Source of the DNA: Rebecca billardiae RCC1528
Taxonomy: Eukaryota > Protista > Haptophyta
NCBI GenBank assembly: GCA_965240325.2
Contig: OZ251229.1
Coordinates: forward strand, 124,001 to 188,000
Reading direction: 5' to 3'
Length of the DNA: 64,000 nucleotides
A program made the position numbers and the translations under genes. Below the pieces are notes generated by a model. That model was given only the letters and a program-made list of their open reading frames with translations. It did no database searches and had not been told where the DNA came from. Of this stretch, positions 47,236 through 55,768 are shown one piece after another (within the stretch, counting starts at the first letter, position 1; the number at the start of each line of letters is the position of its first letter).

Positions 47236-48560
47236 GCAGAGGGCGGCCGCCGCGCAGCAGCAGCAGGAATGGCGCTGCGTGCGAGCACTTGCAATGAAGT
47301 GCGCATCTGCTGATGATATTACACCGGCACACACTACACATGCAGCATATCGATCATCAATATCATGCATGACAGACCGCGACGACTTCGCGTACTACTA
47401 CTATAGTATAGTAGTGACTGCTGTTGGTTGGGGGGCCCGCGGTGACGATGCTGCTGCTGCTGCATGATGATGATATACGCGCGTACACATGTCGGGCCGA
47501 TCGGACCATGGACCGACCGATGATTTCTGCCGGCGGTCGCTCTCCGCGAGCTGCTCGATCAGACCGCCCGCGCCGCTCGACTGCCGCCGCGCGCGGTAGT
47601 CGACCACTGGTTCGTCAGACTCGACAGACACAGAGCAGTAGACAGGCAGCACGCCCGGGCATTCGGCGCGACGTCCAGGCGTGCTGTCGGCAGCAGCTGA
47701 CGCGGACGACGCAGTCAGAGTCGGGCCCGGAGTGGCCTGAGGGCGCTCCTCGGGCCGCTCTCCGCACGGAGACTGCCGCAGCACTGGCTGACCAGGCGGA
47801 TATGGACCGTGTGCCGTGCCCGTGCTGCACGACGAGACCTGTCATCTGCGCGCGCAGCTAGTCCACGACTGCGCGCGGCGCGGGCGCGGATGCCGGCGTG
47901 CTGGCGAGGTGAGCAGGGCGCAACGCCGAGGGCGAGACCGACGGCTGCAGACCCAGCCACCACTGCCCACCGGCGGGGCGCGCAACGCATCATGATCATC
48001 ATGACACTGAGCAGTAGTGGCTTGCTGGCTGCCCTTATTGCCCCGGCCTTGTCGGTCGCAGCATCAAGGCCGCGCCGGTCTCTAGCTAGACTCTACTCGT
48101 ACCACGGAGACGACCGGGAGTCAGTGCCAGTGGGAGTCGGGGGCGGAAGGCTAGACGCATTGATGCGGCACTGCGGGCGGGGCGCGCGTGACCAAGGGCA
48201 CTGCGTGACCGAACGTCATCGTCGCGTCGCGGCAAGCAGACGACGAGATATCATCGCGTCAGCCTGCGCGCGCAGCAAATATCCGCCATCGCGTACTCGT
48301 CAGCATATCATCATTGGGTTCATCAGTCCGGCGTCTGCAGAGTGCAGCAGATAGACTGCAGTGAGGCACGTCGTCGGTCTCGACTGACGGCCTCACACGC
48401 GGTGATATGAACATGACGAGTGGCGCGCGCGCATAAAACGCGGCGTTCGCGGCGGTGGCGCGGGTATATATATACTACAGTATATCATCGCGTCGTCAGC
48501 AGCAGCGCCCGACGAAGGCCGACGATTAAGCAGACTATAATATGTCGTCAGCGGCGCCAT

Positions 48561-48682
48561 ATGTGTGTGTGTGTGTGTGATGTGTGCTGTGTGTGTGTGT
48601 GTGTGTATGTGTGTGTGTGTGTGTGTGCGTATGTATATGTATATATACATACATACATACATACATACATACATACATACAT

Positions 48683-48752
<70 letters not shown>
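48561..48752. repeat. Compound microsatellite (TG)n-(TACA)n-(CA)n-(TA)n
   Basis: Visible runs; the TG and CA arms are mutually complementary. Confidence 0.92.
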
Positions 48753-48753
<1 letters not shown>

Positions 48754-49072
48754 GTTATCATCGCGATATATCTCTGCGCGCGCTGATCGCCCGTGTCGTC
48801 GTCCGCCACGGTGTCGTCCGCCACGGTCCGTGTCGTCCGCCACGGTGTCGGCGCGGGCCGTGAGCGGTGGCGTGACGGTGAGAGGCCCGCGTCCGCGGTC
48901 TTATAGACAGACAGTTAGACTGCTACGACTACGACTTATTATTATTTCGGGCCCTAATTAGGCCGCCGGCTGATGCTGCTGGTGGTGCGCTACTATATAT
49001 ATGATGGCTAGCAGTCGTCATCAGCATCATCAATCAGCAACTACGAGTATCTATATCGTCGTCATATCGTCC

Positions 49073-52000
49073 TCACGGCGCCGCGCGGCGCTCCGTGCTC
49101 GCGCCCTCCTCCGGGCAGCCGTCGCTGCAGCGCCGCGTCGCCGGGCCCTGCGAGGGCAGCGAGGGCGCGGAGCTCGTGTTGAAGGAGGCGGAGAGGCTGC
49201 TGCCCGGCGTGATGGCCGAGGACGACGAGCCCGCGCCGGCGCCCCCCGCCTCGGCGGCGCGCGGCGCGGGCGCTGCTGCGGCGGCGGCGCTGCCAACGCC
49301 GCCGGGCGAGCGGCGCGGCGCGCGCGCGCCGTCCGCGCCCTCGGCGGCCTTGGCCGCCGCCGCGCCGCACGCGGACGGCCGTCGGCTCGGCGCGGCGCGC
49401 ATCGAGCCGCCGAGCGAGCCCGCGCCCGCGGCGCCGGCGGCGCCGGCGGCGCCGGCCGGCACGTCCGCCGCCGGCGCCGCCTCGCGCCAGCGCGCGCGCG
49501 CCGCCCTCGTCTCCGCGTGCACGAGCGGGTAGTAGGCGCGCACGCGGTCGTTGAAGCGCGAGACGGTCGCGAGCTCGACCGCGAGCTCGATGCGCATCTG
49601 GTCCTCTGCGCGCGTCGCCTTGCAGTACATGACGTGGAAGGCGTCGAAGGAGGCGACGATCCGCTCGAGCGCAGCGCAGTCGCCGGGCGCGGCGACGCAG
49701 ACCACGTCCACGTCCTCCAGCCTGCCGCCCATCGCGCACCAGCAGAAGAGCTCGACGACGCACCACAGCCGGTCGACCAGCGTGGGCCCGCAGAGCAGCA
49801 GCAGCTTGGTGCACTTGGTCAGGTAGACGGGCATGTGCTGCAGCAGCTGGTGTGGCCGCAGCCGCGGGTCGGCGCAGCACGCGTCAAGCCAGACCGACGG
49901 CGCCACGCCCGTCTCCTTCTCGATCGCCCGCGCCCACTCGGTGAGCGCCGCGCCCTTGGCGTCCGCGTCGTCCTCCCAGCTGTGGCACACGTAGTAGTCC
50001 GCGCACGAGGAGACGGAGAAGGGCGAGGGCGGCGCGGAGGCGTCGGCCGCCCACCCGCCGCCGCCGCCGCCGTCGCCGCCCTCCGCCTCCGCCTCCGCCT
50101 CCGCCGCCGCCGCCGCGTCGCGCAGCCCGGCGCCGCCGGAGCCGTCGGCGCCGTGCGCGCCCCGCGCCGAGTCCGCCGCCTCCCGCCGCTCGGACGGCGG
50201 CCCCGACCCCGCGCCGCGCCCGGACTCTGCCCCGGACTCTGCGCCCTCGCCGTTCACGACGATGGGCGGCGGCGCGGCGCGCTTGGCCGGCCTCGAGCTG
50301 GGCTCGCGGCTGCGCGGCGCGGGGGGCTCGGCGGCGGGCGCGCCGGCGGGCGCTGGCCGCGGCGGCGCGGGCGGCTCGGGCTCGGCGCGCGGCGCGCCCG
50401 CCGCGGCGTGCGCCGCCGCGGCGCGCACCACGGCCGCCGCCGCCGGCGGCGCGGCGGCGGCGGCTGCGGCGGCGGCTGCGGCGAGCGCGGCGCCGGCCGC
50501 CTCGGCCGCCGCCGCGACCGCGGCGACGGGCGAGGGCGGCTGCTTGGGCGCCCAGCGCGCCGCGCCCGCCGCGCCGTACGCGGGCGGCCCCTGCTGCTGC
50601 TGCCAGTGCGGCGTGTGCGGCGGCGCCACGCCCGAGCGCGCCATCGGCCGCTCGGCGCTCGGCTGCAGCATCCGCGCCGCCTTGCGCCGCCCTCGATCGT
50701 CCAGCCGCACCGCAACAAACGTGCGGCTCGCCTCGGCGTAGAGGGCCTCGGGCTCGACCTCGCCGCTGGAGGCGCAGCCGTAGCCGATGAGCGGCGCGAG
50801 CGGCGCGTACGTGCCCATCGAGCCCGTCGCGCGCGCCAGCGCCGCGTGCACGCGCTGCCTCGACAGCGGCCCGAGCAGCAGCGCCCCGAGCGCAAGGGCA
50901 AACCCGCCCACGAGCGCGTGAGTGCTCAGCGCGCCGCCGCCGACCGCGGCCGCGGGCTGCTCGGCGCAGAGCGGCGGCGGCGGCGGCGGCGCGGCGGCGG
51001 CGGCGGCGGTGCCGTCCGCGTCCGCCGGCGCGGGCGCGGCGTGCGGCCCCGCGACGAGCACCGCCGCGCAGCACAGCAGCGAGCACGTGCCGAGCTGCAG
51101 AGCCGTCGCCCCGATCAGCTGCCACGCGCCGTCCAGCAGTCGAGGCCCGTGGTGCCACGCGCGCACGAGGCGCAGCAGCGCGACGGCGGCGATCAGCGGC
51201 GACCAGAGCGCGCCGAGCGCGGCGGCGGGGGCGCACGGCGCGGCGGCCGCGTCGACGCCGCCGCCCGTGAGCCAGCGCACGGCAGGCCCGAGCGGCGGCG
51301 GCGGCGGGTGCGCGGCCGAGCCGGCGGCGGCGGCGGCGGCGGCGGCGGCCGCGTCGGGCGCGCACGGCGCATGCAGCAGCTCGATGGCGCCGAGCAGCAG
51401 CGCGAGCGGCGAGGGCGCGAGGCGCGCGACGGCGCGCACGCCCAGCACCCGCCCCAGGTGCCGCGCCGACGCGAGCGCGCTCGCCGCCGTCAGCGCGGAC
51501 GCCAGCAGCCGCGTCTGCGCGATCGCGGAGCGGCTCGGCTGCACGCTCAGCAGCAGCGCGGGCGCGGACAGCAGACACAGGAGGACCCACAGGGAGAGGC
51601 GCGAGGCGGGGGCCTCGAGCCAGAGGGAGACGGCGCCGGCGAGCGCGCGGAGCGCGCGCACGCCGCGCCCGCCCGCCGCGCCGCCCGCCGCCTCCGCCGC
51701 GCCCGCCGCCGCCGCCGCGCCGAGCGCGTCCGCGCCGCCGCCGCCGCCGCCGCCGCTACGCGTCTGCAGCCGGTGCTCGACCGCGATGCCGCCGACCGCG
51801 GCGACGCAGAGCGCGGCGCTGACGGCGCCGACGCCCTGCAGCACGCGGCGCTGGTGGCCGCGCGCCTCGTCCATCGCGCGCACCAGCCTGCGCACGATGT
51901 TCGCCTCGAGCGTCCGGTCGAAGTCGAACGAGAACGTCTTGCGCAGCGCGCCGCGCCGCGCGCCACCCTCCGGCTCGGCCGCGCCGGGCGCGTGCGCGGC

Positions 52001-52294
52001 CGCGTCGCCGTCGAAGCAGAGCGAGGCGTCCATCGTGGAGCGGAGGCGGAGGGTGGGCGGGCGGCGCGAGGCGGCGCCGCGCGGCGCGCCGCCGAGCGCC
52101 TCGGGCGCCTCCGCCGCCGCGCCGCCGCCGCCGCCGCCGCCGAGCGCCGCCGCGCCGCCGTTGAGGCCGGCGGCGGCCGCGGCGCCGCGCGTCGCTCGCA
52201 TCGGCCGCGGCGACGAGTTGACGGACGGCGCGGCGCTGCCGGCGGTGCTGCCGCCGCCGCCGGCGGCGCCGCCGGCGCTCGAGCCGCCGGGCGA

Positions 52295-52326
<32 letters not shown>

Positions 52327-54128
52327 CCACGCCGTCCGCGAACGACTTCTCCGCCCTGCGCCTCGAGAGCGGCGAGCGCGTCTGCTCGGGCGGAGGCACG
52401 TTGGCGGACGCCAGCACGACCTCGTGGTAGGTCTCGCGCAGCAGCCGCAGCACGTGGTTGCCCGAGATCTTGTGCTCGGGGCGGAGGAGGAGGCGGTGGG
52501 AGACGCCGTTGTGCGTCACCGTCTCGCACTTCACGAAGAGGGACGACGTGAGCGGCAGCGCCGTCATCAGCGCCAGCACTGCGGGGCGGCGCGCGGCGCG
52601 CGCGCGCGCGTCAGCGCGAGGCCGCGGCGGCGGTGCGGCGGGCGCGCGGCGCGCGGCGCGCGGCGCGCGGCGCGCGGCGCGCGCTGTGCGCACCGTCGTA
52701 CGGCTTGACGAAGCCGTTGAGGTGCGTGACGATGTCGTCCTGCGCGCCCAGCTGCGCGTACTCCGCCGCCTCAAACTCCTCCGCGTCCACGCCGCAGAAG
52801 GTCTCAAAGTACCACTGCTTGGTGCAGCGCGCGGGCAGCTTGCCCTCGCACAGCTTGAGCCACAGCCCCTCCAGCCCGAGGAACTGCGCGTCCGCCAGGT
52901 AGCGCATCACGACGCACTCGGTGCGCTCGGCGAAGGAGCGCGCGAGCTGCGGGCGCGCCGCGCGGGCGCGGGCGCGGGCGCGGGCGCGCGCGGCGTGGCG
53001 TGAGCGCGGGCGCGGGCGCGGCGTGCGGGCTGCGCTGCGCGGCGCGGCGGCGGCGCGGCGTCGAGCGCGCGCGCGCGGCGGCGCGCGCGCGCAGCACCTG
53101 CATGGGCAGCATGGGCACGGCGTGGCGGCTGATCACCGTCATCGGCACGCCCTTGTCGAAGCAGAAGGCGTAGACGGCCGCCGCCGCCGCCTCGTCAAAG
53201 CCTGCGCCACGGCCGCACGGACGGGCGGAGGAGCGCGCGGCGGCGGCGGCGGCCGCGGCAACGGTGAGCGGCGCGCGGCGCGCGGCGCTGCGGGCCGCGG
53301 CGCGCGCGCTCGGTCGCGCGGCGCGAGGTGGGCGCGGCGCGCGCGCTCGCCGTTGTTCACCGCCGCGTCGGGCACCCATCCGAACTCCGACGCCTCGTCG
53401 CGCTCCAGCCCGCCCATCACGGTGACGGAGGCGGTGCGGTCCAACACGAGCGCCGGGTGCGAGGCGATCACGTCCGCCACGTCGCGGAGGGAGGAGATGA
53501 GGACGAAGGTGATCGACTTGGGCGCGGCGTCCTCGAGCGTGGAGAGCAGCAGCTCCGCCCCGTCGTGCAGCCGCTCCTCGTCCACCTCCTCGAACCCCTC
53601 CAGCCGATACTCGTGCGGCTGCGGTCGCTGCTCGTCGCCCGCGCTCCCGATCCCGACCGGGACGTCTCGCTCGCCGACGTGGTCGAGGACGCAGCGGGCG
53701 AGGCGCGCGCGCGCGGCGGGGTCGCCGCCGCCGTTGGCGATCACGGCGCGCAGGAAGATGCGCTCCTGCTGGTGCAGCGTCGCCGCCACCAGCAGCGCTG
53801 CACGCGCGCGGCGCCGGCGGCACGGCGCGAGCCGCCCGCACGGAGCGCGCTCGATCAGCGCGCCGAGCGCGTGCGCGGAGAGGCGGGGCGCGCACGGCGC
53901 GCCGCACGCAGCGAGCGGCGCGCGCGCATCGGCCCGCGCGCACCCAGCCCACACCGCGCCCGCGCCCGCGCGCGCGCGCGGCGCCGGCCGCGCGCGGCTC
54001 GCGCTGTGCGCACCTTTCACGTCATCCGGGTCCGGGCCCGGGTCGGTGACAATGACGAAGCCGAGCGACTGCGTCCGGCGCGGGGCGCGGCGGAGCAGCC
54101 GCAACGGCTGGGAGCCGAGATGCAGCAT
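49073..54128 (-). CDS. Nucleoside-hydrolase-like (XopQ/HopQ1-type) + multi-TM + TIR/HET-like fusion, about 1474 aa (exons 54128-54014, 53797-53351, 53201-53098, 52946-52694, 52578-49073)
   Basis: All four junctions are phase-compatible (4425 nt total). N-terminus IVTDPGPDPDDVKAL, VPVGIG, VMGG, NNGFDEAAA, PYD; TM block; C-terminus YVCHSWEDD...VWLD...PVYL..C...RLWCVVEL. Confidence 0.8.
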
Positions 54129-55006: not shown

Positions 55007-55768
55007 TCAGTCGGCGGCCCGCTTGGGCGCGCGGCGCGCGCGCTTCGCCTGCGAGCGGCACCACTTGGCGAACCAGTGGACGTGCAGCCCGAGCACGGCG
55101 GCCATGAAGGGCCACACGCGCAGCGCCGGCGCCGGGATCGCGTAGTAGAAGCGCAGCATGTACGCGTGGTACCCCAGCCGCAGCAGCAGGAAGCTGCCCC
55201 CGAACAGCCAGTCGGAGCGCAGCGGCGGCCACAGGTGGCCGACGGCGAGCACGACGGTGGTGAGCTCGAGCGGGAAGGCGACGGCGAGCCCGACGGTGAG
55301 CTCCCACCGCAGGCAGCACCCGTAGAACACCAGGTACGCCGCGTGGTGGACCCAGCCCGCCACCAGCTCGAACTGCTGCGGGTACTCGGCCGCGCCGTAC
55401 AGCGTGTCGGCCACGAGGAAGGAGACGAAGAGGACGGCAGCGCGGACGGAGGAGGGGTCGACGGAGAAGTGGGCGGAGGGGTCCCACAGGCTCCCGTCCA
55501 GCGCCATGCGCGCCGCGCGCCACACGCCGTACGGCCCGAGCGGCGCGGCGACCGCGAGCGTGAGCACCCACGCGCGCGCGCGCGCTCTCGCAAAGAAGGG
55601 CGCGCGCCTGCTCGCGTGGAAGGCGAGGCCGAGGTACGCGGCGGAGGCCGCGCAGGCGAGGCCGGTGCTCGCGTCCAGCGCGCCGAAGAGCGCGAGCCAC
55701 GCCGCCGAGGCCACCGCGCTCGCGCCGGCGAGCAAGGCATCGCGCGCAATCGTCGACGAGTCCGCCAT
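55007..55768 (-). CDS. TLC (TRAM/LAG1/CLN8) domain membrane protein
   Basis: FLVAD, VHH, ELTT, FLLLR, LHVHWF within TM helices. Confidence 0.8.
   Translation of the reverse strand: MADSSTIARDALLAGASAVASAAWLALFGALDASTGLACAASAAYLGLAFHASRRAPFFARARARAWVLTLAVAAPLGPYGVWRAARMALDGSLWDPSAHFSVDPSSVRAAVLFVSFLVADTLYGAAEYPQQFELVAGWVHHAAYLVFYGCCLRWELTVGLAVAFPLELTTVVLAVGHLWPPLRSDWLFGGSFLLLRLGYHAYMLRFYYAIPAPALRVWPFMAAVLGLHVHWFAKWCRSQAKRARRAPKRAAD

Follow-up and report, generated by a model that had tools for sequence, protein, structure and literature searches.

A XopQ/HopQ1-like hydrolase domain joined to a membrane block and a TIR-fold domain in a pavlovophyte gene family

We analysed a 64,000-nt stretch of the haptophyte Rebecca billardiae RCC1528 (contig OZ251229.1, positions 124,001 to 188,000 of the forward strand), here called the window, to whose first letter all coordinates refer. 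On its minus strand, the locus 54128..49073 can be reconstructed as a single intact gene with five exons and four introns. The predicted product carries an N-terminal hydrolase domain of the type of the effectors XopQ and HopQ1, a transmembrane (TM) block and a C-terminal TIR-fold domain. Comparison with public sequences establishes this predicted architecture as that of a multigene family in pavlovophytes. We propose, at what we judge to be an even chance, that the membrane-anchored TIR domain makes a cyclic isomer of ADP-ribose (ADPR) and that the cis-linked hydrolase linearises this product, which would yield a self-limiting or thresholded signal local to the membrane.

Gene structure of the 54128..49073 locus

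When joined, the exons amount to 4,425 nt, in frame, and encode a product of ~1,470 residues. The features of the gene, in the order of transcription, are as follows.

54014..54128 (minus), exon 1: start codon and first strand of the hydrolase domain; aligns with the N-termini of homologues P0002, P0027 and P0065
54021..54044 (minus), DPGPDPDD: match to the HopQ1-like non-canonical Ca2+ motif DXXXDXDD; XopQ reads DPNKDPDD in the alignment
53798..54013 (minus), intron 1: GT-AG, 216 nt, in frame, GC 0.87; orthologues run through without an insert, DPDD(V/I)KALLVAA
53351..53797 (minus), exon 2: hydrolase core including VMGG; PF01156 at E=6.7e-6 (unspliced reading frame); best PDB match XopQ at E=1e-4
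53202..53350 (minus), intron 2: GC-AG, 149 nt, GC 0.89; the junction NN|GFDE is unbroken in orthologues
53098..53201 (minus), exon 3: FDEAAA...LPMQ, placed by orthologue alignment
52947..53097 (minus), intron 3: GT-AG, 151 nt, GC 0.93
52694..52946 (minus), exon 4: hydrolase lid region (LEGLW, QWYFETF, KPYD), which holds the counterparts of XopQ ligand contacts
52579..52693 (minus), intron 4: GT-AG, 115 nt, GC 0.93; across the site orthologues read KPYDVLALMTALP
49073..52578 (minus), exon 5: 1167 codons and stop; covers the last part of the hydrolase domain, the TM block and the TIR-fold domain, with low-complexity linkers and a low-complexity tail
50657..51964 (minus), membrane block: amphipathic helix, about six TM helices and a juxtamembrane motif, from hydropathy, an AlphaFold2 (AF2) model and alignment
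49487..50029 (minus), TIR-fold domain: 181 aa; AF2 pLDDT 91.4, pTM 0.86; Foldseek and VIA-align matches
49751..49765 (minus; Glu at 49751-49753), WCVVE in helix alpha-C: W-x-x-x-E as in AbTir W204/E208 and ROQ1 W82/E86

The exon pieces were aligned one by one, not as a joined protein, against three transcript-derived orthologues. These were P0002, a full-length MMETSP transcript; P0175, a full-length transcript of Pavlova gyrans (MMETSP1466); and P0025, which occupies 46-2955 of a 3,281-nt, mRNA-sized JGI contig. Each piece aligned from its first to its last residue, and the orthologue coordinates were contiguous. On P0002, exons 1 to 5 matched residues 10-33, 35-182, 184-217, 218-301 and 303-1052; at the three junctions that split a codon the alignment passed over exactly one orthologue residue each time, and at the phase-0 junction it passed over none. 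Three of the four introns are of the GT-AG type, two of these sharing the donor GTGCGCAC, and the remaining one is GC-AG; all have a higher GC content (0.87-0.93) than the exons. The start codon at 54128 is the first in-frame ATG past the upstream stop. The five-exon model is established by this homology to transcript-derived orthologues. The original prediction of four phase-compatible introns, one of them GC-AG, joining three parts is thereby borne out, as is the junction 52694/52578, which it had singled out for checking. The motifs it listed are all present in the model: DPGPDPDD, VMGG, NN|GFDEAAA (across the GC-AG intron), PYD and WCVVE.

It might be argued that neighbouring hydrolase and TM-TIR genes have been joined by chance open frames. 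The GC content around the locus is ~75-88%, and mechanically called open reading frames (ORFs) are long in every frame; at ~80% GC stop codons are few and long chance ORFs are expected. However, the hydrolase domain itself crosses intron 4 into exon 5 (KPYD|VLALMTALP), and all three parts occur in complete transcripts of Pavlova gyrans and of another MMETSP species. Therefore, the fusion does not appear to be two genes joined by artefact, and we regard this explanation as very improbable.

Further in-frame introns may lie inside exon 5. The candidate is 50957-51061 (minus; 105 nt, GC 0.90), the sole in-frame GT..AG segment of this exon that resembles the other four introns. In the AF2 model it falls in a low-confidence loop that connects TM5 and TM6, and the Diacronema lutheri homologue P0065 has a gap there.

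The three parts of the predicted protein

The Pfam model of inosine-uridine nucleoside hydrolases (IU_nuc_hydro, PF01156) matched the unspliced focal ORF weakly (E 6.7e-6) and P0002 above threshold. When residues 1-345 of P0002 were compared with PDB sequences, the sole significant matches were XopQ entries (4KL0, 4P5F and 7JLU chain B; E ~3e-33 over ~310 residues), and no canonical nucleoside hydrolase appeared up to E=1. In the same comparison focal exon 2 matched XopQ at E 1e-4 and canonical nucleoside hydrolases at E>0.3, and exon 4 gave XopQ as its sole, weak match (E 0.08). The motif DXXXDXDD defines the HopQ1-like proteins (HLPs), the canonical form being DXDXXXDD (PMC11685791). The crystal structure of XopQ has been determined with ADPR bound, and the contact residues were named as D120, Y279, Y311, L345, W361, F366 and Y398 (Martin et al., bioRxiv 10.1101/2020.08.13.246413). 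We mapped them through the P0002-XopQ alignment, with a chain-index offset of 13 verified on six residues (Y279, Y311, L345, W361, F366 and Y398). The focal domain keeps all four Asp of the Ca2+/ribose site, L345, W361 and F366 of the base lid (LEGLW, QWYFETF), and Y398 with the next Asp (KPYD). By this alignment the predicted catalytic and Ca2+-binding core and the adenine lid are XopQ-like, and part of the phosphate/ribose environment is different. The N-terminal domain is thus established, on sequence grounds, as a putative Ca2+-dependent glycosidase of the HLP type with an intact metal/ribose site.

The focal domain shares with the effectors XopQ, HopQ1 and RipB the fold, the clan, the DXXXDXDD motif and the counterparts of L345, W361, F366 and Y398 with the Asp that follows. 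It differs from them in that it belongs to a eukaryotic, intron-containing gene without the secretion/14-3-3 N-terminal region, in that the same polypeptide continues into a membrane block and a TIR domain, and in that the counterparts of Y279 and Y311 are V and P.

At the other end of the protein, an AF2 model of the C-terminal domain was built on 22 homologues. With this model, Foldseek retrieved the TIR domains of plant TNLs (RUN1, SNC1, RPP1), SARM1, SPARTA and AbTir with probabilities of 0.99-1.0. VIA-align gave a similar picture: all 50 matches listed were TIRs (Z 8-10.5, 120-146 residues), the best being RPP1 and RUN1 (Z 10.5, rmsd 3.5-3.7, 139-143 residues aligned). A search of PDB sequences with the same domain gave no match, so that it was identified by structure prediction alone. 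The WCVVE motif falls within the modelled helix 88-99, past strand 73-80; its Trp and Glu are equated with those of AbTir and ROQ1 by motif and secondary-structure position, not by residue-level superposition. Cyclisation of ADPR depends on the Trp at AbTir W204/ROQ1 W82, and all cyclase-type TIRs examined conserve an aromatic residue at this position (bioRxiv 10.1101/2022.05.07.491051). Further focal motifs are in line with the strand-helix pattern of plant TIRs: DYYVCHSW (beta-A), VWLD (beta-B), KLLLLCGPTLVDR (beta-C) and LWCVVELF (alpha-C). Every conserved position examined is kept, namely D11, H16, S17, W18, D49, W89, C90 and E93 in domain numbering. Plant TIRs have the consensus ivvlS..Y..S.WCL.EL, and the focal beta-C/alpha-C motif LLLLCGPTLVDRLWCVVEL parallels it. 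Taken together, the modelled structure and these motifs establish the C-terminal domain as a predicted TIR fold with the catalytic signature.

In fold (Z 8-10.5) and in the W-x-x-x-E pair, the domain resembles the TIRs of RPP1, RUN1, ROQ1, SARM1, AbTir and Thoeris ThsB. Unlike those of plants, SARM1, AbTir and ThsB, it is unrecognised by Pfam TIR models and is attached C-terminally to a polytopic membrane domain, and it has none of the NB-ARC/LRR, SAM or ARM partners found in plant TNLs and SARM1. A kinship to the fungal HET family (PF06985) was also considered. The focal domain shares HSW.DD, WLD and RLWC..E motifs with HET proteins and with a protist family marked by WLDxxCIDQ; however, neither a HET profile match nor the W.D..CI.Q motif was found in it, the focal sequence being WLDACCADP, with CADP in place of CIDQ. 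The closest ESM-Atlas clusters are haptophyte fragments that were automatically named HET or TIR, and a paralogue in the window matched Pfam HET below threshold (E 0.013, 16.3 bits against a 22.5-bit cut-off).

Between the two domains lies the membrane block. It has five strong hydropathy peaks, and the AF2 model of exon 5 residues 205-640 shows six long helices (pLDDT 74, pTM 0.70), the sixth corresponding to a weaker segment at ~355-380 of exon 5. A juxtamembrane motif, APLAPLIGYG...EPEALYAEA..F..V.LD, is conserved across the family as APLAPLIGYG...EP..LY.EA...F..V.LD. Fold matches for the block were sought in three ways. Foldseek against the PDB gave none with E<2, the best match in a wide VIA-align search was to generic helical bundles (Z 8.6), a score too low to be meaningful for helical proteins, and ESM-Atlas gave TM-scores of 0.25 or less. 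Therefore, no kinship to channels or transporters can be claimed. An arginine pattern in TM3 that resembles S4 was rejected, as P0001 does not conserve it. No hydrophobic signal peptide was found at the N-terminus encoded by exon 1, and the N-terminus of P0002 aligns with the start of the XopQ core and not with a signal peptide. Because a signal peptide is absent and the number of TM helices is even, both the hydrolase and the TIR domain are probably cytosolic.

The three-part organisation proposed originally therefore holds in each part. The N-terminal domain, predicted to have an IU nucleoside hydrolase fold like XopQ/HopQ1, proved specifically XopQ/HopQ1-like and not generic, as judged from the PDB comparison of the orthologue; the expected TM bundle agrees with the hydropathy peaks and the six-helix model; and the domain described as TIR/HET-like with a retained WCxxE was resolved as a TIR fold by AF2, Foldseek and VIA-align, without a HET match.

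Distribution of the family and order of its domains

An exhaustive HMMER search with the orthologue hydrolase domain returned 899 clusters at E<1e-3, of which 157 passed E<1e-30. In the best 150 hydrolase clusters (50% identity), a local hidden Markov model detected the focal-type TIR in at least 28. The search in other algae that had been proposed for this architecture thus succeeded. Members were found in Diacronema lutheri (KFE25_004819, KFE25_000057, KFE25_010687, KFE25_009278 and others), in Pavlovales sp. CCMP2436 (T492DRAFT_956313, T492DRAFT_877045 and others) and in Pavlova gyrans. The named members are annotated merely as hypothetical or as "IU-NH domain-containing", and the D. lutheri homologue P0004 is labelled "TIR domain-containing protein" in UniRef. 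Two D. lutheri gene models omit the start of the hydrolase domain: P0003 (KFE25_006283) opens at ...LPMQLAKSFAE and P0004 (KFE25_009413) at the final strands; therefore, public annotation partly conceals the fusion. Of 31 family proteins scanned, 17 carry DPGPDPDD unchanged; the others are mostly without the N-terminus.

HLP and TIR domains were also found joined in other ways. In P0053 (Logan SRR30664517, L001:8001-10844), and in the fragment P0082, the order is reversed, with TM helices followed by the TIR-like domain and then the hydrolase. P0053 itself has five N-terminal TM helices, a CIDQ-type TIR-like domain, an HLP hydrolase and one TM helix. The contig of P0053 is compact and eukaryote-like, with genes 18-323 bp apart and a bromodomain, an fn3 and an acyl-CoA dehydrogenase gene as neighbours. 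In P0167, a transcript of the dinoflagellate Biecheleria cincta, and in P0158, an HLP hydrolase (DLGQDNDD) is followed by a CIDQ-type TIR-like domain. In a tree of TIR domains the hydrolase-first proteins form one long-branched clade (SH-aLRT 99), and the reversed P0053 and P0158, which has the arrangement of the dinoflagellate transcript, fall among generic CIDQ-type TIR-like domains. In an approximately unbiased (AU) test, a tree that keeps six hydrolase-free sequences apart was not rejected (p=0.34). The domain orders make repeated, independent fusion of HLP and TIR domains likely, the phylogeny falling short of proof. The HLP domain occurs in other fusions as well, namely with a C-terminal sulfotransferase (P0111, P0114, P0163), with WD40 propellers (P0073, P0100, P0102) and as tandem HLP pairs (P0058, P0081); the annotation of these proteins is limited to Pfam domain matches.

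HopQ1-like proteins were reported previously in fungi, mosses and algae (Aureococcus, Thalassiosira, Emiliania huxleyi) in a study that deals with the hydrolase domain alone and in whose text TIR does not occur (Piechocki et al. 2018, PMC6019455). These algal, fungal and moss HLPs belong to the same clan, the focal domain being instead part of a hydrolase-TM-TIR protein. We found no literature on a fusion of an HLP hydrolase with a TIR domain; full-text searches for the combination gave a single preprint, on the enzymology of XopQ, which is considered below. What was already known, then, comprises both domain families, the XopQ enzymology and the database entries of these proteins, and what is new is the description of the fusion, as predicted from sequence. 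The original claim that the architecture is undescribed holds for the literature, but the locus is one of a multigene family, whose proteins are already deposited in public databases as hypothetical.

The window also holds three near-identical, hydrolase-free membrane TIR/HET-like copies, at 1097-1234 (minus), 6411-6548 (plus) and 9255-9392 (plus). They read HSWSDDPDAK...WLDVLCIDQ...RLWCVMEL, and an intron apparently precedes the SWSDD segment. These three TM-TIR genes stand 39-48 kb from the focal gene and could possibly be its "writer" partners.

Possible function and genomic surroundings

XopQ and its homologues, including HopQ1, were reported in a preprint of June 2026 to hydrolyse the ribose-ribose O-glycosidic bond and so to convert 2' cyclic ADPR (2'cADPR) to ADPR. 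The kcat/Km of XopQ for this substrate was 1.4e7 M-1 s-1, near diffusion-limited. XopQ was inactive on 3'cADPR, pRib-AMP, canonical cADPR and 2',3'-cAMP/cGMP; XopQ and HopQ1 had no activity on nucleosides; and all XopQ homologues assayed were catalytic. Eukaryotic homologues or fusions are not mentioned (bioRxiv 10.64898/2026.06.15.732069). Degradation of 2',3'-cyclic nucleotides by XopQ, on which the original prediction drew, was not reproduced in that preprint and is now disputed.

Given that XopQ hydrolyses 2'cADPR, a TIR product, the most likely reading of the focal protein is that its membrane-anchored TIR domain would generate a signal and the hydrolase linked to it in cis would degrade that signal. 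The idea of a signal writer and eraser in one polypeptide is supported and better grounded by this activity, the function of the focal protein itself being inferred from its sequence. Like other TIR proteins, the focal protein would probably be activated by oligomerising, here in the membrane, whereupon the TIR domain would cleave NAD+ to a cyclic ADPR isomer. The XopQ-like domain in cis would then break the ribose-ribose O-glycosidic bond of this product to give linear ADPR. The protein might in this way emit a brief, local signal that limits itself, or hold accidental signalling below a threshold. Its substrate may be the one cleaved by XopQ, 2'cADPR, or, given that two XopQ contact tyrosines differ in the focal domain, another isomer. 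A eukaryotic TIR clade with haptophyte members includes a Chlamydomonas TIR that produces 3'cADPR (bioRxiv 10.64898/2026.04.20.719644). The writer-and-eraser reading is linked to the comparative data by the joining of HLP and TIR in at least 28 clusters, in the reversed order of P0053 and P0082, and in the dinoflagellate protein P0167. Rel/SpoT, GGDEF-EAL proteins and CD38 are known cases in which one polypeptide both makes and degrades a signal; the logic of the focal protein would be similar by analogy, the folds and chemistry being unrelated.

XopQ/HopQ1 was an orphan effector for 20 years. Here, a free-living alga is predicted to carry an enzyme of the same type in covalent linkage with a TIR domain; the linkage recurs across a multigene family, and the domains occur in more than one order. 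This is independent comparative ("Rosetta-stone") support for the view that a single small molecule is acted on by HLP hydrolases and TIR domains alike. We know of no role for eukaryotic HLPs, and the fusion suggests a testable endogenous one. Haptophytes are an ecologically major lineage whose immune signalling is, to our knowledge, undescribed; the family is a pointer to cADPR-isomer signalling in them. Naturally paired writer and eraser domains would also be material for biochemistry.

Several observations weigh against a writer and eraser in one protein. In the focal hydrolase XopQ Y279 is replaced by V (Q in P0002) and Y311 by P. No Pfam family, TIR and HET included, matched the unspliced exon-5 ORF, nor the C-terminal domain at E up to 10, the latter search being less sensitive than nominal since HMMER filters discard most matches above ~0.1. 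The count of six TM helices comes from a medium-confidence model (pLDDT 74) with just five strong hydropathy peaks. Among the hydrolase-first proteins the Asp motif hardly varies, and of 30 representatives 21 have the TIR Glu and 15 the Trp, a pattern that favours hydrolysis as the constant job of the family, with TIR catalysis optional. The focal copy keeps both residues.

Because this uneven conservation favours hydrolysis as the constant function, the main rival is a dedicated eraser, in which the TIR-like and TM modules would co-assemble with separate membrane TIR writers of the genome and place the hydrolase at the source of the signal, as a negative regulator or for self-protection. The loss of TIR Glu or Trp in about a third to half of representatives beside a nearly invariant hydrolase motif fits it, and so do the juxtamembrane motif and TM-TIR layout, which are common to hydrolase-free TIR-like proteins, and the generic WLDxxCIDQ...RLWCVMEL paralogues within the window. 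However, the focal copy keeps all TIR positions examined and bears no mark of an inactive TIR, and for this protein we hold the explanation to be rather unlikely. Domains of the SLOG and NUDT9-homology types read ADPR-type ligands in ThsA and TRPM2, and the XopQ-like domain might similarly bind an ADPR-type nucleotide with little turnover and control the TIR domain or the membrane block allosterically. XopQ was crystallised with ADPR and its base and phosphate contacts are largely kept in the focal domain; the two differing contact tyrosines could reduce catalysis, and a TM block without a fold match lies between the two domains. Conservation across the family of the four Ca2+/ribose Asp and of the PYD Asp is nevertheless what would be expected of an enzyme, and every XopQ homologue assayed in the preprint was catalytic, so that a ligand sensor seems unlikely. 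It appears improbable that the hydrolase acts on ordinary nucleosides or on another glycoside, in salvage or cytokinin-like metabolism, with no small-molecule logic shared with the TIR domain. Membership in PF01156 and the fusion of HLP domains elsewhere to sulfotransferase or WD40 would agree with such unrelated chemistry, but the kinship is to XopQ specifically and not to the canonical IU nucleoside hydrolases, XopQ and HopQ1 do not act on nucleosides, and fusions of HLP and TIR occur in two distant lineages and show at least two domain orders.

The writer-and-eraser reading can be extended further, to a speculation that we consider doubtful. XopQ-type 2'cADPR hydrolases might be no invention of plant pathogens but an old eukaryotic off-switch native to TIR signalling, with the pavlovophyte proteins as self-contained pulse generators that gate their own six-helix block, a channel or transducer, via ADPR or the substrate; such hydrolases would also be a possible evolutionary source of the XopQ/HopQ1 effectors. 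If this were true, a complete, previously unseen TIR second-messenger module would be contained within one polypeptide.

As for the immediate surroundings of the gene, a compound (TG)n/(TATG)-type microsatellite lies directly 3' of it (window 48500-48830), where GC falls to 0.51 and translations read CVCVCV/HTHTHT/YIYI. The upstream neighbour is a 253-aa ORF at 55007-55768 (minus) with several hydrophobic segments (MADSSTIARDALLAGASAV...).

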